Shown: piece after piece, positions 17,748-62,341 of the stretch
How the letters are laid out: every line of letters starts with the position of its first letter
Position numbering within the stretch: the first letter of the stretch is position 1
Assembly: GCA_011109175.1 (NCBI GenBank)
Contig: RDEW01000012.1
Span: 908,552-972,551, forward strand
Length of the DNA stretch: 64,000 nt
Reading direction: 5' to 3'
From: Dicyema japonicum
Lineage: Eukaryota; Animalia; Dicyemida
Made by a program: the position numbers and the translations under genes
The notes under the pieces: model-generated
What the model saw: the letters and a program-made list of their open reading frames with translations, nothing else
Databases searched by the model: none
What the model was told of the DNA's origin: nothing

Positions 17748-19823
17748 TTTATTACTCCCGGAATCACAAGAAAGAGGACAAGAGTTATCGTCTAATTAAG
17801 TGATCCTGGTGTCCATACCAGTCCATTTCCTGCGGTTAGTTTTGGAGTCCTGGATTAATCTCCACAACGGGGAAGGTTTCTTCTCGTATCTCGGGCCGGC
17901 GTCCATATTTTGTTTGATGTCCGGTCCCAGAGGATGATCAGGGGACTTTGCCATATTGAGGAAGTCACTGTGGCGTTCCGTATGGTATCCTATGATGGGG
18001 GGGGACGTTTAGTGTTCTCCATAGTAACGAAATGACGTATTTTCGACGATCTCAATAGTATTCTAGACAGTGGTTTTGTAAAACTTCCAGCTTGCTCTGT
18101 GCCGATAGTGATAAGGGGGCAATCCATGCAGCACAGGCGTACTTGGTAGAACAAATTGTGTGTTAGAAGCTCCAACGATGGGCCAGAAGATACTGGGGAA
18201 TCCGTAAAAGCTTGAGAATTCCAATTTCTTTTGAATCCTCGCGGTTACCAGGTCAAGTGATGATTGAATGAAAGGAGAGGATCCATGATGACTCCAAAGA
18301 TTGAAAGGGTTTTAATGGGGATCGAGAATCATAAAATTTTATTTTGGCGTTATTTTTTGTGATGAGGAAAACGTCGTACTTGTGACTTTCGTGGTTACTT
18401 GATATATTTAGACGGTTCTTCAAAAACCAAAGACCCACAAGGTTTAGTATCTCTTGCACGGACCGTGTCGCCTCCTCTACTCTTCGATGTTTCAGTGCAA
18501 TCACGAGATCATCCGCATACGATAAAAGAAGTGGATTTTTGGTAGTTGGGGATGGGAGCTCACTGAGGAACATATTGAATAGCGTTGGTGACAACAGTGA
18601 TCCTTGTGGCACTCCATTTGGAAGGTATCGCGGTTTTGATTTTTGGTTGTTTGCCACCACTTGGTCCATTCGACCGTTGACGAAGTTAGCCAACCATGAA
18701 TCGAGTTTAAGGTTGATCGACGTCATTAAAATTTTTGCCGTAAGTATCTTCCGGAAGCTGACTCAAAAGCTTCTCTACATCCACGAGACCACCACGTTCT
18801 CTCGTGTGGATTTGGGGTATTCAGGCCGTCCGAGATGAATTGACCAGTTTTGTTAATGAGTTGTTGTTGAGTGTCCTTCGTAGAATTCCGTGTAAAAAAG
18901 ATGGTAGAATTACGAAAGGACGGATCTTGAGAAGGACCAGTTTTTCTAACACTCGTGATAAGGTGGATACGGGCTGTGGGAGACGAGCAGTTTGCTGGAC
19001 ATTGATGGTGACCCATCGGAATAATCTTTTGCGAGCTCAGAGTATAATTTCGTTGATGTATTTGATAGCAGCGTCGATAGAGCTGAAATCCTTTATCCGG
19101 AAGGCGTGAAGCTGTAGTTCGATAAAAATATGTGAAAGCGGGCCATATTGTCTTCGAGAAGTTAATATTGGTTCTCGGAGTGTTTGTTAACTAATGTTTT
19201 TGTGGATCCTCATTAAGATTGTATTATGGTATGTAAGTCGTATATAACATCCCATGAAATAACAGCCGCAAGAGAAGGAGCGGCAAAAAAATGTCGAGTG
19301 AAGTAGAAGAGTAGTCTCGACGGGAAGGGGTGCTTATGTGTTTGTTTGGATTATTGAGAATGAACAGGTCGTCAAATGCTTCCTGATTAGCATAATAAGG
19401 CCTCCTCCATTTCCATGACTTTTGTCTCGCCTGAAAAGGAGTATCCCAAAAATCGGGGGTTAGCCGCCGTGGGTTAAGTTTCGTCTCTTGGAAAAGAGCT
19501 ATATCCACTGAATGTATGACGAGGAAGCGTTATAGTTCGACAATTTTCGTCCGGATACTATTGATGTAAACTTGCATCAGATCTGGTCCAGGATTTTCCT
19601 CGACGTCTCCACAGGAAAAAAGCAGGATCCGACACCATCCACGCCTCCATGGTTGCGAAATAGGGAGTTTGCGACTCTTTTCCAGCACTTCAAGTAAGCG
19701 ACGCCACCACGTGGGTGAGTCACTCGGGTTATTAAAATTTTGCTGACTCATCAAAAAATTCGGATTATTGATGTTCGGATTAATGGTGGGTTTACATGTG
19801 TGGTTGAAGAACATATGAGTCAA
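17748..19823 (-). mobile_element. Ingi/Vingi-like LINE with N-terminal 2A peptide, APE and RT, degraded
   Basis: LLFSCGDVEENPGP (19584-19610) directly before APE start (INSIRTK, DIALFQETKL); RT NGVPQGSLLSPTLFN, LSYADD (18253-18726); 3' hairpin 17748-17806. Confidence 0.85.
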
Positions 19824-20676
19824 TTATTGGGCCTTGATTGACAGATTTATATTTTAGACGATTTTGTGGCATGAGTTTCCTGCCAGCTTGCTCCAATTAC
19901 GTCGATGAGGCCCTGTTTGAGATCATGGCTTTGTAATGACATAGGAACTGCATGCTTGAAAGAAAACTCTCATTCAGTCCTGTGGGCCTTAAAGAACAAC
20001 TAAGAAATTTCAGTAAACGCTATGGAAATGAAAATTATTTTGCTCACAAAATTAACCCAAATGACGTATTCCAGTATGAATTAGCATTATCCTGACATGT
20101 GTCAAGTGGTAGAAGATTTAAAACTCAGTATAACAACAAAGTAAATTTCTGAGGAATGATCTTAGCAACTAATTCGAATATTAGTTTCACGGAATTACTG
20201 TGCCTTATAATATTCAGAATATCGCTGTTGTCCACGGAGGAAACTGGAGACCAGTAGGCAGCGTATTGCCAAGACAGGTCGTTCCTAGAGATCCTCCACA
20301 TCCACGTCAACCCCTGGCTGTCCAGTGCAAGCAAAAGGATGTCGACGATCGACGCCAACATCAATACCTCACTGCGGAACCGGATTGTCTGCAAGAAAGC
20401 ATGCCTTGACCCCCTTCCAACGATCAGTTATCATAACTGCTCCCCACGTGGAGCCATAAATGTTAAGACCCTCGTGAAAGTGGTGCTATTAGTTTTAAAA
20501 AATACATCAAAAAATTTGAATTGACCAATAATGAATTTGCATAATTTAAGCGGCGTCAGTTATAAGCCAAATTTTAATTCAGACATGGCATTTCTGTGTC
20601 GTCTTGACGTCTTTGTGTTCGTTTCTTAGTTTTGCTGATATGTACGTTTTTAGTTTTCACTTTGAGATAGACAGAC

Positions 20677-22940
20677 ATGAATAACAAGGTTAATGTTGAG
20701 AAATTGAAATTGTTCGACGAATATTTCCGAAAAGTCCCGGGACTATGCGAAGGCCATTCTCTCGAGAAAAAAGAGTAGCAGTTTGCTCAAAATCTAGTGA
20801 CGTCTACTCTGCGGAAGATTCTGCAGATAAAGTCGACAATTTGGGTTTAAATTTAATTTGGAAAGTAGAAACACAAGTTGTGAGTTATTCCTGCGGCTTT
20901 ATTGTGGGTGGACTGTTGGAGATTCGACATGGCGCTTTCCTGGAGAATATAAGCGTCGATAAAAATTATTTCTGCTGTGATTTTGTCTTTGACGACGATC
21001 TGACGTAATTTTATTTTTATAGTTTCGAGAATTACCGACTCTGACTTGGAAAACGTGGAGATTGAATTGAGGGAAATGTTAGGGAGTAATCATCCATTTG
21101 AAGTCTCTTATATCCCCGTTCGTGTGATTTTGTCAAAATTCGTAGTTTCTGAATTTTTTATTTCAGGAAAATATTGGATTTAAAAGAAAAATCACACGAT
21201 TTTCCGACCAAGAAAATATTCAATTTTGCAGGTTGGTTGACTACCCGAGCATAGATGCGGTGATGTCTGCAACTTTGCGTCCTCAAAGACAGTCAGAAAC
21301 ACCTCGGACATAAAGGAAATAAAAATATTAAATGTATCCTCTATTTGTGATACGAAGGAAGGAATTGTGGTTGATATTCAAGACGGCAACGTCCAAGTCT
21401 TAAGGAGAGTGTCCGGTTTCGTCTTCAAGGATGCCAAGGAGGCAGAAATCTGGCGACTGAAAAGAGATCTATACTCCCATCTTGGCTATTTCCACATTGG
21501 CTATGTTATCAATTTCCAGTCATTTTAGAAGCAAGATTTGTTCATTGTTGGGGAGAATAACAATATTTCCCTCAACAGTAACGGATCGAGGATTTGGCTG
21601 TCTTTGTGTAATATCATGGAGGTACTCCATATTTTAACGTCTTGTAGGATGTGTACTCAAAAAATAAGTACCTGAAGATCATAACCCCCGCTATCTACAA
21701 TGTTCGACACTGGGAAGATAAACTGTACAGGCTGAAGAGTAAGAAGCCTTATATGGTATATTAAAGTTGAAAATCAAAGGGGACTTTGTTAGTTCATGAA
21801 AGCAGAGAAGGAAGATTTTTTTTGAAGGACACCAACTCCCTGTTTCATTGGTTGGTATTCCCGACTATTATAGTCTTTACTTTGAGGAGATAAAGCCTAC
21901 CAGCCTTCCCTTCAAGTTGATAGATTTCGGAATGCTATACGAGAACAAGTGCAAACACTCCGATATGACTTACCCCAACGATTTGACCAACTTGGATGAC
22001 GCCACGGTCTTTTGCTTGAGGGAGAATGTACGGTCCCGCTTTATTTAGATTGAAAATGAGATTCTGGATATCCTTACATTGTGTGTGAGGATTTATTCAA
22101 TGTTCGGTCTTCGGGTCATCGCCAGGATAACTTCCCAAATGCCTGATGATTCTGAAGACTCGGAGGAGTGGAACTTTACCGTCAAAGTTTTCTTAGTGAG
22201 GATTTGTAGAAAATGAAGGATGCTCTTAGCATGACGAGTATATTTTGTGATCCTCACCCTATATTTGCGGATGCATTCAATTACCCCCGAGTAAATGACA
22301 TTTAGTGACCTTAGATTGAACTGATGGCGAAGTCTGGGAGTGACTATTTGTACAAATGCGGAAAGATTGAAGTCTACTTGGATTTGACAAAACAATTCGG
22401 TTTGAATTGCAAGATGTAAATCTCTTTGGTCATTTTCATAGTGGAAGGGAAAATATTACCCCCATGGTCGTCCACCATCAGATCGTCGGGTCATTCCTTG
22501 ATTTTATGTACTTACTATGTGAGCATTATCTAGGGATCTGGTATTCCCCAGTAATGTATCTAATCCTTTAGGCCATTCTGGTTATCTGGTTGCAACTGCA
22601 TAGTTATGCCACTAAAGGAGGAGTACCTTGACTATTCGTATACAGTATATTCTCGGTTTGTAGCATTAAAGGTGTGTGAGCGCATAAAACAAGCTAATTT
22701 CAGCTGTGATTTGGTTTGTGATTTCGAGGACACCTGTAATCGAATGAATGAAGCTAAAAAGAAGTCATATTTTTTGTTGGGTAGTATTTTTGTATATTTT
22801 TAGTAATTGGTGAGAAGGAATTTGTGGGAAATAAAGTCTTTCCAATAGCCACATATACCGTTATGGGTGAATGTACCCTAGAAGATTTTATTGAGAAGAT
22901 GAGAGAGTTGAGGGACTCTAGAAATTTTATTGTTTGCTGA
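20677..22940 (+). CDS. Threonyl-tRNA-synthetase-like protein with degenerate catalytic motifs (~627 aa, 15 introns of 21-37 nt)
   Basis: Spliced product aligns along eukaryotic ThrRS: RCGD..VRNTSDIKEIKILNVSS, LRRVSGFVFKD, IITPAIYN, EKEDFFLK, LPFKLIDFG, DDATVFC, HYLGIWPFWLS, LVIGEKE. 2264 nt minus 381 nt introns plus one missing T (T8 run 21816-21823) gives 628 codons. Confidence 0.85.
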
Positions 22941-23379
22941 TTTACTCTTAATTTCGTAAATTTTCTTATTTTCTTTTTAATCCCTGTTAGAGATCCCTTT
23001 GCTTGCTCTGGACCACCAGGAGTCGGGGGAATTGGAGGATCCACTCCCATCATGCCTTCTAGATGAACAGAATAATGACCACATCTTCTCTTTTCTGGGT
23101 CAACCTTTGAGTTATGCACAGCACCGAATACACCTGACTGATCGCTGGTTTTAGCCGTGACTTTCTTGTTAGTCATCTGTTTCCTTTACTCTAAGTGACG
23201 AGGGTACCCATCTTCTCCGCTAGTAGCTATGGAGCCGTTTGACTCAGACACTTTTAATTGCATCGTTGTAGCATTTCCTAGTTCATGTCAAAATTGTTAA
23301 ATTATAAACTCTGGTGTATCTGCCACGAGACTATTGACCCCTCAATCTTTAGCTATGGTAGTAGTTGCCTTTGAATAAA

Positions 23380-52620: not shown

Positions 52621-55600
52621 AACCATAAAAACACAGAAAATGGGGAAATTAGGTCAATTCTTGTATAAAATCAACGATCCTTTAATTTAATTTAAGAATT
52701 ATTTTACGGTACCTCAAGGAGCACTTTGAAATTACACAGGTGGTACATACCCCACAACATCTTACTGAGCGTAAGCAGTGCGTCGAAGTGCGATAATTAT
52801 ATTTTGAAGGAGGGCATGAAAAATGGAAACAATTAAAAATACATGACTTTCCGTGATGGGGGATATGGGAAAACACGTTACTTCATTAATAATTTGGATA
52901 AAATTTTCAAAGCGCAAATGTGTGGGGACAACTCGATCAGGTTGTATGCTATGGAAGTTTGTGAGTAACGTCAATGATTGCTAAAGTACGTACAAATGGG
53001 GGATATCAGTATTCAAACCTACCTAGGATTATACTGTGGTATTTCTGATAGAATACAAGTAGGGTCACTAATAATCTGTCCAGTATAAGGTGGATGGAAT
53101 TCTAAGTGGCTTCCTTTTCGATCAGCCATGTGACTGAAGCAGTGATGACTCGTATTCAAGAATAAATATCATTTACCCCTTAGTTACGCTAGGTACTACG
53201 TCTCCAAACCTCTACATCATTCCTATATGGGACAATAAGGCTCTTCAAAGTCTTGATTATCAGCGATAATTCCACGAGTAATAAGACCAACCACGCGAAT
53301 ACAATCATGACTTGGTAAGCTTACAATTATTTAAAAGTATTAAACTGATTTTATATAATTAGTGGAAATATTGATAAATATGAACGACTAAAGTAGGATA
53401 AGAATTTGAGTTGTCACAATTTCTGATTAATCCAAAGTTGAGGGGACCCGGGAATACCTTAGCCATTTTCTCAAATTCCTGATTTTAATGAGAATATTTG
53501 TGTTTGTCCTCGAGCATAAGGAGGGTGGTTCTCGGTCATTGGAAGCGTCAGAGGCGAATTGGCGAATTTAAATGTTTAAATAAACAATTTTCACGAAAGT
53601 GGACTATTGGTTAGGAAGTAAAGTCTATGGGACACTAATGATTCTTTCGAATCGTGTAGATTTGCCTGTAAAATTCCACGGCATTTTATGATGAGTCTTG
53701 TGGCTATTTTGTTTTTGTAGTCAGGATTAACATCTTCAAATTGTTGTAGTCGAAGGTATGATTATGTAATGTACAAATATTACATAATCTGTGACCAACT
53801 TCATTACTAAAGTAGAAATATAGATGACCAACTGGAGGTCTCCGAATAGTGCATTAATCATCGTTACGATTATGAGTTTACAGAATAATGAAAATTGACG
53901 TGGTTTGCTGCTCATTTGTTAGAGACATTTACATAAAGTTAAAATTATGTCAAATATTTATTATTTGGTTTTACTATGGTCAAATTAATAGAACTGTAAC
54001 AATTTTACCTGAAAGAGTTATCCCTTCTGTTGGAACATCATATTAATTAAAGAATACACACTTGATAATATGTTTGTGTGCGAGAACGTTGGACATTTAG
54101 TTGTGTTCGGAACTTTTGGTAAGCTTTTTTTCGGACCATAATCCGAGGATATTTTTAATAAGCCTGATATATCGCAATTAAATTTTATCCGGTTCCCTCG
54201 GTCAGAGTGGAACTTATCCTTCCCCATCATCACGTCTTTTCCAAGTAACCGCCATTATGAAAACTCCTCATAGTAGAGAAGAGAGGAATCTTATTGGATC
54301 CCGACCAGGCTCCTAAGACAGGAGTCAATTACTAATTATAATGTTATGTCATAAGGAGATTGACAGTCGTTTAATGAGCATCTATTAATCATAACCAATA
54401 CTCCACAAGACAACTCACTATACAAGTCAACTCTCGCGTGGAGACAAGTTTTTGGATCGATCCCCTACTTATCAAAGATACAAACCATAGACGCAGAGTT
54501 TGATTAAGCAAAGGAAGGCCCAGAAGTTGACTTTTGCAATCGATATCCTATGAAAACAAGAAAGAAGGGACTTTCTGGAAGCGGTGGGTGCAATTGAGGG
54601 GTAACCGGTAAATTCATCGCGAGGTAAATTCATCCCAGTTAAATCAATGAACCACCTAGGCGGGTTTCTAGATAGAAGAGGTCGAAATTTTGATTTTTTA
54701 TATTATAGTTAAATTGCGATTTTAGAGATTATTCAGCGATAGGAGTCACGTATCCGTGAAGGTAGGACCTATGAAAATTGAAAAGAGAGGACCTATTTTT
54801 TCACCTCTCTTCAGAAGTTGACGTATGCCTGCCATACATTATTAGGGGGATCAATTTAGTTGTCACAAGCAGACGTTCTCTTTTGCGTTCCCTCCTTGGA
54901 TTAATTACCAATGACTATTTTTGCTAGGCTTACCAAAGATTGTACGCCTGTGGCTAACAAATAATAAAATAAATAACTCTGTCAGTATTCATCTATATAC
55001 GACGATTGAAACATAAAATTGCCAGTTTTCTTTAATGCTGAGGACAGTATTCATCTCTATCTTAAACACAAGAGTAATGGTTGCATGTAATTATTTTTCT
55101 TTTAACTTATAAAGTAGCTTATAATCTGGTGATACTGTCCTTGAATTCTCTTGTACTTTTTCGTCATTATTATAATTGATTTCTATAAAATGATATTTTT
55201 TCGCTAATTTCTTATATCTTGACAGCATGGCTCTGCAATTTGTAATGAGTGATAGAAGTAAGAGAAAACTTTTTGAAGATGGATACATTTACTGTTTTGA
55301 AAAATTTAATGGCAAAGTCACATTATGGAAATGTGAATCCTACTATAAAATTAAATGTAAAGAGAGAGTACACACCAAGGGAGACATCATTATTAAAAGA
55401 GTCAACGAACACAATCATGCTTGTGATGCTGCATATGTCGAATCAAAGAGAATTACTCAAGAAATAAAAAGAAGAGCTCTTGCATCACAAGATAATCCAC
55501 ATATTATTATAACTGAAGTGTGTGTGGGTTTGCCACTGGAGATGTCTGCCCGACTACCCATAGCTTCTTTAATTAAAAGAAACATTAGAAATTCAAGAAA

Positions 55601-55786
55601 TACAAAAGATCAAGCTCTTCCTAATCCACTTAACATAGACCAGTTAAGAATACCTCCAGAATACAGATACTCTTATGCCAATGAACCTTTTCTATTGTTT
55701 GATAGTGAAGACAGTGCAAACAGAACAATAATTTTTACAACGAGAAAAAATCTGAATTTGCTTTCCATATTTGTTTAATATATTAT

Positions 55787-58273
55787 GGTTGTAGGAAAAA
55801 AAGTCAAGTGGAAAAAAGGTCAAGCGGAAAAAAAGTCAAGTCTGTAAGCGGAAAAAAAGTCAAGCGGAAAAAAGTCAAGTTGTCTTTTTGTAGTTTATAT
55901 CGCATTTTTGTGATACTACTAGCATCTTTTAATTTTTTATAATTTTTTTCAATACTTGACTTTTTTCCGCTTGACTTTTTTTCCATTTTTGAAAATTTTT
56001 CCCTTATAAATTTTCGAAATTTAGCGCAAAATGGAAAAAAGTCAAGTCCGCTAACGAAATCACGGACTTGACTTTTTTTTCGCTTTGACTAAATCAATTT
56101 AAGAATTTCAAGGTAATACTAAAATTGACTTAACTTTTTACGCTTGGTTTAATCTTTTTGACCTTGACTTTTTTCGCTTTGGTTAAATCTTTTTGACTTA
56201 ATCAATATACAGATTTTAAGGTTATAATTAGGCTTATTTTAAATATTATGCTTGCCACAAAAAATAAGAGACAAAATGGAGATAATATCAACTAACAAAG
56301 GAGGAAAGAAAATTTGTTTTAAGGGTTTTATGTATACAAAGCACTCGAAGACAAAAAACTATATAATTTTTAAATGTGTAAAAAAATCTTCACAAGGATG
56401 CAGAGGAAGCCTAAGAACAGATCATAATTTCGAATTTCCCAAGAAGGAATTTCCACAATCACGAATTTGACGAAAGTCAAATAAAACTGATGAAATGTGC
56501 AACGAAGCAAAACTTATTGCTAAAACGAGTCAAGAAAAATCCCTTACAAATCTATTCAAAGGTTGTGTCTGAATGTGAAACAGCAACCAGAATTATTCTC
56601 CCTTCTGCAGATTCTTTCAAGCGAACACTTAGGAATCAACGCTTGTCTCTACATATTCCAAAAAATATTTTCGATCTCGGAGATATTCCATCGTCTTTAT
56701 CTTTAACTCTTGGTCCAGATTCAGAAAATTTTTTAATTTATGATAATCATAGAAGAACCGATAGAATATTGATATTCAGCACCAAAACTAATATAACGTT
56801 ATTGGCGAATTCAAAATCATGGTATATGGATGGAAATTTCTCCATGGCACCATGTATCTTCAAGCAAATCTATTTTATCAGGATTCAGTTCAATGCCAGT
56901 GCAATTACAGTTATTTATGGAATATTACCTTCTAAATCACGAAAGATTTACGAAGAATTTTTTGAGGCTATTCAAAATGCAATTCATAATTTGAATTTGG
57001 AATTTTGTCTTGAAACTATTATGGCAGACTTTGAAGATTCGGTATTTCGAGCTGTCCTTGCAGTATTTGGGAGACGAATACATATTAGAGGATGTTATTA
57101 TCATCTAAGACAGTCAACCTGGAGAAAAATTCAAGAATTGCATCTAGTAAAACAATATAAAGAAAATATTAATTTTAACATTTTTTGCGCAATGATAGAC
57201 GCTCTTGCATTTTTACCCATTCAAGATATGGAAGAAGGAATAGAATTCCTAATGAATAATATGCCAGAAAATGTTCCAGATTCAAAATATATATTAGATT
57301 ATTTTGATAGAACATATGTTCGCGGTTATTATCGTTGCTTAAATGATCGAGAAAATCCCTTAGCTGTTAGAATACAGCACATTGCTCCATTGTTTCCTCC
57401 AAATTTATGGAATGTGTATGAAGCTACACTCAATAATAAACAAAGAACAAATAACTATTGTGAAGGGTGGAACAATAAATTATACAATTTGACGGGATAT
57501 CGTCATCCATCGATATGGAATATTATATCGTCATTCCAAAAAGAAGAAAAAATGACGAAAACTATTATTGACCAGGATTCCTTTGGAAAAAGAATTTCAA
57601 CAAGAACAAATAAAAAAACGATTGATAGACAAAAAAGGCTTTTAAATATATGTCTGGATCGCCAGGACGGAAAAAAACAGTAGGAGAAGCCCTAAAAGCA
57701 ATTGCATGGAATATTAAATATTCTTTTGATTCACATTAAATAATCCCTTGATTCTCGTTAAATAAAAATCATATGTTTATAACATTTTAAAAAATTTTAA
57801 AAGTAGAAAAAATCTGTTTTATTTTTAGAATTTATTTCCACCACGTGTAGTTTTAGTTGTGGCGGGACATTTTAATTCATTAACATTAGCCAAAATTAAC
57901 TATTTAAATAATTTGTTATTCTAAACTCGCTTACTTTAAAATGAAACGATCATGAATAAAAATCTTAATTTATAAACGGAAAAAAGTCAAGTCCGTGATT
58001 TCGTTAGCGGACTTGACTTTTTTTCCGTTTTGCGCTAAATTTCGAAAATTTATAAGGGAAAAATTTTCAAAAATGGAAAAAAAGTCAAGCGGAAAAAAAG
58101 TCAAGTATTGAAAAAATTTTTAAAAATTAAAAGATGCTAGTAGTATCACAAAAATGCGATATAAACTAAAAAAAGACAAACTTGACTTTTTTAACTTGAT
58201 GACTTTTTTTCCGCTTTGACTTTTTTTCCGCTTGACTTGACTTTTTTTCCGCTTGACTTTTTTTCCGCACTCC
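55787..58273 (+). mobile_element. MULE DNA transposon, inner element nested in the outer transposase
   Basis: ~300-bp TIRs with AAAAAAGTCAAGCGG repeats; 8-bp TSD TATATTAT (55779-55786, 58274-58281). Confidence 0.95.
56279..57683 (+). CDS. MULE transposase of the inner element
   Basis: FLYWCH-like N-terminus (56252-56470) joined by a 1-nt shift to 56490-57683 with WYMDGNF, MADFE, GCYYH, TNNYCEGWN (DDE triad and CxxH present). Confidence 0.9.
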
Positions 58274-60039
58274 TATATTATATACGATTCATGGACTAGA
58301 GAATAATGATGTTTTACCACTTATATACATTTTAATGTGTAAAAGAACGGAAGAAAGCTATAAAAAAGTTTTTTCGAAACTAAAATCATTGGAGCCATCG
58401 TTATCACCGAGGACAATTATCACTGATTTCGAAAAATCAGCTATAAATGGATTTAATATTATATTTCCTGATGCTACTACGAAGTGCTGTTTCTTTCAAT
58501 TTTCCCAATCCATTTTCAGATGCATCCAATCACAGGGATTACAATTATTATATCAGAGAAATTCAGAATTCGCTTTGAAAATGCGCATGATTGCAACGGT
58601 CGCATTTGTCCCAACATTACATGTTGTTCATTATTTTGAACATTTGTGCGATTACATCAGTTTCCCAGAAGAAGTTCAACCTGTACTGGATTATGTTGAA
58701 GATATTTGGATTGGACGTCCTGATAGTTGTCAAGTTCGTCGTTGTCAACGTTTTGCCCATGAATTGTGGAATTGTTTTGAAGCAGTGAGAGTTGCTGGGC
58801 CTAAAACAAATAACTCTTGCGAAAAATGGCATCATTCTTTTAATTCTTTAATTGGAGCGTGTCATCCTACGATTTGGAAGTTTATTTATGTTTTGAAGAA
58901 AGAACAAGCAAGAAATGAAATTAAAACTGAACAGTATGTTGCTGGTGGGGAAGGTCCTACACAAAAGAAAAAATACAGAGATAATGCTTTAAGAATTCAA
59001 CGCATTGTAAATGACTTCGATAATCGCGAAATTCTTGACTATTTAAAAGGCATTGCCTATAATTTAGCATTTTAGAAATTAACACAATGTTTTTGTTAAT
59101 AATTGTCATAAACTTGTTTTCTAAAAATTATATTATCATAAATATTCACTTAAAGTTTGACCTTTGTTATTAATCAATAATCAGTAAGATAATCAATAAT
59201 TTTTCTATCACTTTAACTAATACACACACGTGTGGTGCACATCGTTGATTAAAATTTAACACTATTTGGAGAATTGAGGTTTTCAAATTTTTTTATCTTG
59301 GGGATCTGGCCACGTGACTCATCGTCAAATTAATCTCCAAAATTACATTTTAATGATAATATAAAAAATCAAAATTTCTACCTCTTCTTTCAAGAACCCA
59401 CATGGTCGCTTGAATTAACCGGCGATGAATTTACCTCGCGATGAATTTACCAGCGATGAATTTACCAGCGATGAATTTAATTACCGCGATGAATTTACCA
59501 GCGATGAATTTACCAGCAATGAAATTACCGGCGATAAATTTACCTAGAACCCAATTGAGGTACAGATGTAAGCTGTTACTGCTAATTGCTGGAACTGACA
59601 TCACCTATCTGTTTGACTATATTTTTCCTTTTTTCTCGATGTCCTGGATTATAAATAATAATTCATTAGTCACCCACCCTGACATATCATCGACCCACTT
59701 AAAAATTTATTATCTGGAGCCCCAACCTGATAGCATAGTGTTATGAGGTTCTCGTTAGGTGGTCCACCGGCTTTCCACTAAATTCCGAAAGTTTCTTCAA
59801 GTATGTCTGCAGAAGAACTCGACAGGAGTGTCTACATTCAAGATCGAACGAGATTTCTATGTATGGAGTCATAGTTTTGCGTAAACTGAAAAAGACGGCA
59901 ATACTCTCGCGTGGTGGAATAAATCGAATAGTTTTCCGCCTAGAGAGTATATATGCTCGATCCTAGGAGAGGAAATGGCAAATCTCCAAGAATAAAAATT
60001 ATTGCGACCTCATGAATTATAATTAAACTGATGGCCTAG

Positions 60040-60683: not shown

Positions 60684-62341
60684 TTATAGTTGATAAGTGT
60701 TCTTCATGTCCTTCAATCTTTGCTGATATTTCAATTTCGCCGTTTTATTGAAAAATCGTTTAAAGGAGAATCCATAGACATTCAGTTTCATTAGGGAAGT
60801 CGTTGGAATCCCCATTGTTCGAGTCAATGCAAGTCCTATCGTTTTTTATAAAATGCGACACATCCTCTTCGTCCGAAAGTGTGGGGATATAGGAGGCTCG
60901 ACAGACCTTAAATTGGCCCAATTCAAGTTCTTAAAGAAGGGGTGGAGTTTTATCTCGTTTGCACCAAATTTCCCGAGTCGATTGTTGGCGTCACAACAAA
61001 AATTCAAAATCAGCTTCAGACACGTTTTGCTTAAAGTCGGAATTCTCGGGAAAACAAGGAATCTGTCCCAGTTTATAATCTTAGTCAAACTCCAATCTAC
61101 CTTTAAGTGAGTTTCGTACTCAGTATTGGAGTAGAAGGGAGTCCCCCCGAACACCATCTCGTATAGAATTATTCCGACACTCCACCAATCGCAACTGTTT
61201 GTGTAATCTATCAAAATATTCACAAACGAATACCCAATCCCGTCAAAATTTCAGGGGCGATGTAATTGAGGGTTCCCACGAGGAAGTTGTCTCTGACTTT
61301 CTTTTTGGATTTCGACTTTTTAAAGACCTTTTTGAACTTATTGGCTTTGTTGGCTAAATTTAAGTATCAGTTTCACCACATTTTCTGTTCTCGTCGTTAA
61401 TCTGAAACTCCATGCTGAGTCCGAAATCACACAACTTTACGTGTCCGTCAGCGGCAATAAGAATGTTGTCGGGTTTAATATCACGATGACAGAATTTCAG
61501 TGAATGGACGTATTCTATGGCCAAAACGAGCTCTGAGATGTAAAATCGGGCCCATTCCTCAGTAAAGACGGTTTTCTGGATCAATAAACTCATGAGATCT
61601 CCCCCAGGCAAATATTCCAAAATGAAGTAAAGTGACCTCTTGTCTTGAAATGAGTAGTAAAGCTTGACGACCCAGTCACTGTCGGCCTCTGATAGAATAT
61701 CACGCTCTGACTTGATATTCTTCATTTGTTTTTTTGTCAGAGAATCCTTCTTGGAGATTACTTTCATGGCATAAATATTTTTGGTGTCTTTTTTTCTCAC
61801 CAAAAATACGTTTCCGTAACCCCCATTGCCAACCATGGAAACAAACTCAAACATTTTCACAGTCATCTTTGAATACTAAACCATAAGCGAAAAGTGACCC
61901 ATAGTTTCAAGTAATTCGACTCCATATCTTGAAATATCTCCAATATTATTTTCTTTTTACTTTCTGAGTATCCGTTTTTCTCCATTTGCATTTCAAGCTG
62001 CTTTCTTCGGAGTTTTCTCTGGTTGGCCCATTTCATCAAACCAATGGTGTACTGCTCCCTATACTGTTTATAGGTACTCTCATTAATGAGACCTCTTTCC
62101 TTGGATTCCTTCATGTATGAGCCAACGTTACCTCCAATTTCAGAATCACGTCAATTGAGTTTGATTTGCTAATTTTATATTTTGTTTCTGTCATTCTCCG
62201 ACGAATTGCCTTATATTCTTCGGCTACGTTGCTTTTCGAAATTATATGATAATTCGAAGGCTTATATTGCAGTCTTGGAGATTGGCGCTCAGTTCTACCA
62301 CGTGTCGACGGATCGTCTTTATTTTTAGTGTTTGTACTCAT
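60684..62341 (-). CDS. LATS: LATS/Warts (NDR family) Ser/Thr kinase
   Basis: MOB-binding region RKQLE..ESNYLKL; EADSDWVVKLYYSFQD, HRDIKPDN, DFG, CDWWSVG, hydrophobic motif YGFSFKRFF; five 21-26 nt introns; one C missing at 60883-60886. Confidence 0.9.

Follow-up and report, generated by a model that had tools for sequence, protein, structure and literature searches.

A candidate pseudo-synthetase derived from threonyl-tRNA synthetase in Dicyema japonicum

A gene derived from threonyl-tRNA synthetase (ThrRS) lies at positions 20677-22940, plus strand, of a 64,000-nucleotide (nt) stretch of the genome of the dicyemid Dicyema japonicum (assembly GCA_011109175.1, contig RDEW01000012.1, positions 908,552 to 972,551; hereafter the window). 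Its sequence supports a full-length ThrRS homologue of the eukaryote/animal type, the product of which is probably a ThrRS-derived pseudo-synthetase with a function that we infer from sequence. With a confidence somewhat above even, the locus is read here as an intact lineage-specific gene that arose from an animal cytosolic-type ThrRS and is now non-catalytic.

Gene model and homology

The unspliced region contains no long open frame, and its coding blocks shift frame across GT-AG segments of about 23 nt. The gene was first modelled by a shortest-path search for an open frame under the standard genetic code, and the model was then refined with a profile of 49 references, comprising 48 full-length eukaryote-type ThrRS and the E. 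coli ThrRS. To collect the eukaryote-type references, viral contigs were scanned for a DNA pattern of KPMNCPGH, and the giant-virus ThrRS identified in this way was used as protein-search query; a scan of bacterial genomes with E. coli ThrRS was unsuitable as a profile source, yielding Enterobacterales only. The resulting model starts with ATG at 20677 and ends with TGA at 22938-22940. A ciliate origin or an alternative genetic code was rejected, since the standard code already yields a clean model. The GC content of the window is about 0.38, and that of D. japonicum is given as 36.7% (PMC6736024); the myxozoan Henneguya, at 29%, was rejected as a source. The features of the model that are discussed in this section are as follows.

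20677-22940, plus strand: ThrRS-like gene, whole; 16 exons and 15 introns, with splicing leaving an open frame of 631 codons plus TGA
20677-20879, plus strand: N-terminal segment of about 60 residues, including intron 20775-20797; a vestige where the N-terminal extension and the TGS domain would be expected
22541-22571, plus strand: 31-nt intron, chosen over a 16-nt alternative at 22556-22571 (profile score 210.1 versus 199.4 bits)
22645-22671, plus strand: optional intron of 27 nt, in frame and stop-free, placed by homology only

The 15 introns, a number that the initial annotation had also reached, are located at 20775-20797, 21005-21029, 21142-21166, 21232-21254, 21505-21528, 21622-21647, 21756-21779, 21851-21873, 22028-22048, 22187-22209, 22291-22314, 22416-22441, 22541-22571, 22645-22671 and 22781-22803. 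All are of the GT-AG type, with a median length of 24 nt. Fourteen of them are obligatory, in that keeping any single one destroys the ThrRS-like frame. When the intron choices were tested against all frame-keeping alternatives up to 60 nt away, all but one already had the top profile score. The exception is 22541-22571, which gives the junction GIW/PFWLS without an insertion; splicing out 22645-22671 brings the profile score up from 210 to 221 bits and does away with an insertion of 9 residues. A T-run at 21816-21823, which the initial annotation had singled out for checking with short reads, has an identical length in the contigs of four genomic runs.

GT and AG are common and introns of 20-30 nt are easily postulated, and one of the introns is optional; the model could thus be an artefact, with invented mini-introns masking stops and frameshifts in a dead gene, or with the true exons elsewhere. 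Such an artefact is nevertheless very improbable. Every chosen intron has the top profile score among the frame-keeping alternatives within 60 nt, and the lengths (21-31 nt) and GTA starts (11 of 15) agree with the tiny GT-AG introns known from D. japonicum and myxobolid myxozoans (PMC13644364). Moreover, all 15 exon junctions are free of gaps in the alignment with the snail and E. coli ThrRS, indicating that they are genuine intron positions and not decayed coding sequence spliced on paper.

In a one-subject blastp comparison, residues 59-642 of the spliced protein aligned with residues 69-637 of E. coli ThrRS at 21% identity (E 8e-24). The match to the ThrRS profile, at 199 to 221 bits, is colinear over profile positions 126-692 of 698 and spans the editing domain, the class II core and the anticodon-binding domain up to the C-terminus. 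Chance similarity to ThrRS is excluded by this score and colinearity. Identity to the ThrRS consensus is about 0.25 overall. The match begins at residue 58, leaving about 57 residues before the editing domain. The domain architecture proposed in the initial annotation therefore stands for the editing domain, the class II core and the anticodon-binding domain; the TGS domain, described there as shortened, is truncated to a vestige or gone, the profile match setting in only beyond that region. Elsewhere in the six frames of the window, no segment resembling TGS or any other part of ThrRS was found, and the missing motifs are therefore not supplied by alternative exons there.

Single exons were also searched individually. 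Pfam gave a weak tRNA_SAD match (E 0.014) for the exon with the CxxxH position and a weak HGTP_anticodon match (E 0.17), and PDB sequences gave no significant match to single exons, which are too short and too diverged. Kinase matches to single exons in the ESM Atlas were dismissed as noise.

Residues lost and retained

Substitutions were read from the profile alignment and are numbered as in E. coli ThrRS. The segments concerned are listed below.

20880-20912, plus strand: editing-site HxxxH position, VSYSCGFIVGG; H73Y, H77F
21268-21294, plus strand: editing-site CxxxH position, CNFASSKTV; C182A, H186T
21675-21716, plus strand: class II motif 1 region, the dimer-interface motif, KIITPAIYNVRHWE; Pro296 and Trp304 kept, consensus identity 0.37
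21816-21883, plus strand: zinc/threonine pocket segment, FFLKDTNSLFHCLYF, spanning intron 21851-21873 and containing the T-run 21816-21823; P331D, M332T, C334S, P335L, G336F
21905-22015, plus strand: motif 2 and its loop, LPFKLIDFGMLYENKCKH ... LDDATVFC; H362Y, R363E, E365K, H385T, with the arginines of the loop and F379 lost and D382, D383 and A384 kept
22270-22377, plus strand: amino-acid/ATP pocket strands DAFNYPRIE and YKCGKIEVY, spanning intron 22291-22314; Y462N, K465R, Q479K, T482K, Q484E
22464-22505, plus strand: motif 3, MVVHHQIVGSFLDF; H511, G516 and S517 kept, R512H, E519L, R520D
22539-22937, plus strand: linker WPFWLS and anticodon-binding domain including VIGEKE; E600 kept, R609 lost, isoelectric point (pI) 4.85

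The chemistry of class II aminoacyl-tRNA synthetases (aaRS) needs the arginines of motifs 2 and 3, and ThrRS selects threonine by means of zinc. In the dicyemid protein both hallmark arginines are absent, with Arg363 of motif 2 replaced by Glu and Arg520 of motif 3 by Asp, and the catalytic zinc triad is reduced to H511 by the changes C334S and H385T. The editing residues H73, H77, C182 and H186 are all replaced, by Y, F, A and T, respectively. As predicted from these residues, the protein cannot activate threonine, nor can it proofread by deacylating Ser-tRNA, because the motif arginines, zinc ligands, pocket and editing residues are lost. The profile alignment reproduced the replacements that had been aligned by eye in the initial annotation, namely HRNE to YENK in motif 2, NCPGH to NSLFH and DAHIF to DATVF at the zinc ligands, GSxERF to GSFLDF in motif 3, and HSSAH to YSCGF and C182/H186 to A/T at the editing site. 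The motifs WPFWLS, VIGEKE and LPFKLIDFG, said there to persist, are all present.

That this gene is the organism's working ThrRS, possibly its only one, with a non-canonical active site is hardly credible: H511, D383, G516 and S517 are kept, but Glu and Asp stand in for the universally required arginines, two of the three threonine-selecting zinc ligands are lost, Y462, Q479, T482, Q484 and the motif 2 loop are replaced (K465 to Arg alone being conservative), and no alternative exon in the window carries the missing residues. RNA editing as a restorer of the catalytic residues was rejected, as the codon changes would require transversions or two steps.

Among the 114 near-invariant columns (at least 98% in the 49 references), 42 are kept. 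Retention amounts to 4 of 29 for invariant R, H, K, Q, C and T and to 30 of 68 (44%) for apolar or structural residues (Fisher p 0.07, polar versus apolar). Residual identity is highest in motif 1 (0.37), in the segment corresponding to E. coli residues 336-365 (0.37), which runs from the C334-equivalent strand of the zinc pocket as far as the beginning of motif 2, and in the stretch from motif 3 to WPFWLS (0.43). These best-kept stretches make up the structural and dimer-forming heart of the class II enzyme. In the anticodon-binding domain, R609, an invariant arginine that we take to be an anticodon contact, is lost, and the pI of 4.85 lies below those of all 49 references (median 8.0); given these two changes, tRNA binding is probably weakened too.

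What appears to be preserved is the fold together with the class II dimer-forming core, that is, the motif 1 region, the motif 3 helix and the WPFWLS linker. A dimerisation scaffold is favoured because the best-kept stretches form this heart of the enzyme. The protein may form homodimers or pair with an active ThrRS, and as a subunit of such a dimer would most likely have a structural or regulatory role; this role would parallel that of SLIMP with mitochondrial SerRS or of HisZ with HisG, and not that of a tRNA-handling enzyme. Dimerisation is the weakest step of the proposed mechanism. A more specific version, in which dicyemids use an asymmetric pair of an active ThrRS and a dead, fast-evolving subunit for threonyl-tRNA synthesis or for an unrelated process, is a tentative idea that we rate as rather improbable.

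Maintenance, decay and descent

Substitutions were simulated neutrally on this coding sequence (CDS) with its own base composition. By 80% protein identity, the 200 runs had accumulated at least 4 and on average 10 stops, and by 30% identity an average of 33 stops, with none of the runs staying open. The actual protein is about 75% diverged from the family and has no stop and no frameshift, and all 30 splice dinucleotides are intact. An open frame at this divergence, set against 10 or more simulated stops at far less, therefore argues that selection has preserved the frame during a very rapid evolution of the sequence.

Variation was examined over 20300-23300 in the contigs of the four genomic runs, which come from one sample of an isolate other than that of the assembly. 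Relative to the assembly, about 16 single-base differences and 6 indel sites were found. All 6 indel sites lie in introns (21522, 22300) or between genes, leaving the 1.9-kb CDS untouched, an avoidance with a chance of about 0.003 under uniformity, although indels favour AT-rich non-coding DNA.

The differences at 20300-23300 also indicate that at least two haplotypes or isolates of the species are public, which would permit genome-wide tests of the ratio of nonsynonymous to synonymous variation (pN/pS).

Several observations weigh against an intact, functional gene. The eight coding differences between the isolates comprise 6 nonsynonymous and 2 synonymous changes, and the resulting pN/pS of about 0.75 cannot, on eight sites, be told apart from neutrality; the present amino-acid constraint on the protein thus looks weak. 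The sequencing runs in which the locus was found are of genomic DNA only and contain no splice joints. Among 1.84 billion cluster representatives, a profile search detected no relative of the 83-residue exon, the longest of the gene, and an exact-sequence look-up with one 87-residue open reading frame (ORF) of the gene gave no match. A 36-bit match of the same 83-residue exon to a 1276-residue protein was dismissed as weak. In addition, the active site, the editing site, the basic anticodon surface and the TGS domain show no visible conservation, the proposal of partner binding has the retained fold and motif 1 as its sole basis, and an active ThrRS elsewhere in the genome is something that we infer.

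As a control for the divergence of the locus, a kinase gene of the same window was considered.

60849-61875, minus strand: kinase gene of the NDR/STK38 type, well conserved; HRDIKPDN and DFG both intact in one exon

Over 150 residues, its exon at 61363-61875 (minus strand) shares about 57% identity with human STK38. With a kinase so well conserved in the same window, the decay is therefore specific to the ThrRS-like gene.

The main rival to an intact pseudo-synthetase gene is thus a non-functional relic, which has lost its function and is drifting, either with its frame and splice sites unbroken so far or after a recent disuse that followed a functional divergent phase. The pN/pS on eight differences, the extreme branch length in the tree (see below), the want of any transcript-derived or orthologous protein in the very large collections searched and the lack of a conserved functional module would all fit such a relic. 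The neutral simulation, the unbroken frame and splice dinucleotides of so diverged a protein and the indels that avoid the CDS speak against it, and the 221-bit profile score together with the retention of 44% of the apolar invariants argues for a maintained fold. The relic is accordingly considered unlikely, if by no means negligible.

The descent of the gene was studied with a tree of 50 sequences, which included snail and vertebrate TARS1. The ThrRS-like protein was placed within the animal ThrRS set (Shimodaira-Hasegawa-like approximate likelihood ratio test, SH-aLRT, 100), beside snail and vertebrate TARS1. Its terminal branch measures about 10 changes per site; the corresponding values are 0.26 in the snail and 3.7 in E. 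coli. Positions inside and beside the sampled animal ThrRS are both compatible with the data (approximately unbiased test, p 0.62). According to Pett and Lavrov 2015 (PMC4558845), the vertebrates are the only bilaterians with a separate mitochondrial ThrRS, which originated from a duplication in their own lineage; on this literature, not on the tree, the gene is not expected to be an orthologue of vertebrate TARS2. Hence, of the comparison with TARS1 and TARS2 that the initial annotation had called for, the grouping with animal ThrRS comes from the tree and the TARS2 side is judged from PMC4558845 only; its suggestion of a relic of mitochondrial ThrRS, in the sense of TARS2 orthology, finds no support in that study. 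Judged by its residues, the gene most probably arose within its own lineage as a second copy of the single animal ThrRS, because it would otherwise be the organism's only ThrRS, which its predicted chemistry excludes.

A different kind of organelle history can be envisaged, in which a ThrRS duplicate of the dicyemid lineage was once mitochondrial and lost catalysis when the other copy came to charge the mitochondrial tRNA-Thr. In dicyemid data, trnV is the one mitochondrial tRNA found to date (bioRxiv 10.1101/282285), and in animals the loss of mitochondrial tRNAs accompanies that of mitochondrial aaRS (PMC4558845), which would suit this history. It needs, however, an extra lineage-specific duplication, given that non-vertebrate bilaterians reportedly have no separate mitochondrial ThrRS (PMC4558845), and the N-terminus is acidic and, as judged by eye, unlike a mitochondrial presequence. 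This former organelle copy is therefore regarded as a doubtful explanation; it concerns the origin of the gene and is compatible with either present function or decay.

Genomic context and place among synthetase relatives

Directly upstream of the ThrRS-like gene, fragments of a non-LTR reverse transcriptase of the long interspersed nuclear element (LINE) type (YLPNGVPQGSLLSP...YADD) occupy 18253-19823 on the minus strand, in agreement with the reported abundance of LINEs in the D. japonicum genome. An upstream ORF at 20585-20629 (plus strand) encodes 14 codons of a hydrophobic peptide, MAFLCRLDVFVFVS, and ends 48 nt before the ThrRS-like start codon; through GT donors at codon boundaries and the AG acceptor at 20669-20670 it could in principle serve as an alternative first exon. 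On the other side, a convergent ORF of 140 codons (MTNKKVTAKTSDQ..., with a proline-rich middle) at 22754-23176 (minus strand) overlaps the last 187 nt of the ThrRS-like CDS if unspliced; the two genes stand tail to tail with nearly no spacer. The hexamer CACGTG has 24 copies in the window, where 5.3 would be expected, and none of 100 shuffles reached that count; the copy at 20445-20450 precedes the ThrRS-like start codon by 232 nt, and the gene itself contains no copy. Farther downstream, 55194-59072 (plus strand) holds uninterrupted ORFs of 194, 422 and 272 codons in a genome where genes are cut every 100-200 nt, and these long ORFs probably belong to a DNA transposon or another mobile element.

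Compared with animal cytosolic ThrRS (TARS1), the dicyemid protein has the same colinear order of editing domain, class II core with motifs 1-3 and HGTP-type anticodon-binding domain, shares the eukaryote-type signatures WPFWLS and VIGEKE and groups with animal ThrRS in the tree. Unlike TARS1, it has no TGS domain, carries Glu and Asp for the motif 2 and motif 3 arginines and Ser and Thr for the Cys and His zinc ligands, has replaced its editing residues and has an acidic anticodon-binding domain; its identity of about 25% is also far below that shared among animal ThrRS. Non-synthetase descendants of ThrRS and AlaRS modules include mL39 (MRPL39), AlaX and free-standing ThrRS editing domains. 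These consist of N-terminal modules only, the mL39 type comprising TGS and the second additional domain without a class II core, whereas the dicyemid protein keeps the class II core and the anticodon-binding domain and, unlike the mL39-type derivatives, has lost the TGS domain and the editing-site residues.

SLIMP, a dead aaRS subunit that pairs with the active mitochondrial SerRS2-alpha (PMC10570016), is likewise a class II synthetase relative with its active site ablated and its fold kept. It derives from SerRS, however, and its tRNA-binding coiled coil is kept and supplies tRNA recognition to the dimer, whereas the dicyemid protein has no preserved-looking tRNA-binding module. ThrRS-L (TARSL2/TARS3) and the cyanobacterial T2 ThrRS are also duplicated ThrRS genes with diverged roles (PMC9437257, PMC5909460), but both are catalytically active and the dicyemid protein is predicted to be inactive. 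TARS2 resembles it as a second ThrRS gene of cytosolic-type descent, but is active and of vertebrate origin (PMC4558845). A 2022 review table of aaRS duplicates lists T2 and ThrRS-L, both active, as the only ThrRS paralogues, and searches of literature text found neither a dead whole-length ThrRS nor work on dicyemid synthetases, in line with the statement in the initial annotation that no whole-length dead ThrRS was known. The gene is therefore a probable new, ThrRS-derived addition to the known class of pseudo-synthetases, conditional on its expression.

Pseudo-synthetases are few, and each of them has shown a non-translational use of an ancient fold; one derived from a whole ThrRS is absent from the 2022 review table. 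If unexpressed, the gene would be a slowly dying duplicate of local interest only. If expressed, it would show how far a class II synthetase can drift, with about a quarter of its residues left, both active sites and the tRNA-binding charge gone and the frame kept, and would provide a natural test case for the uses of a bare ThrRS scaffold or dimer interface. Were the asymmetric pair with an active ThrRS to prove true, it would represent a second independent animal invention of the principle known from SLIMP and SerRS2-alpha.

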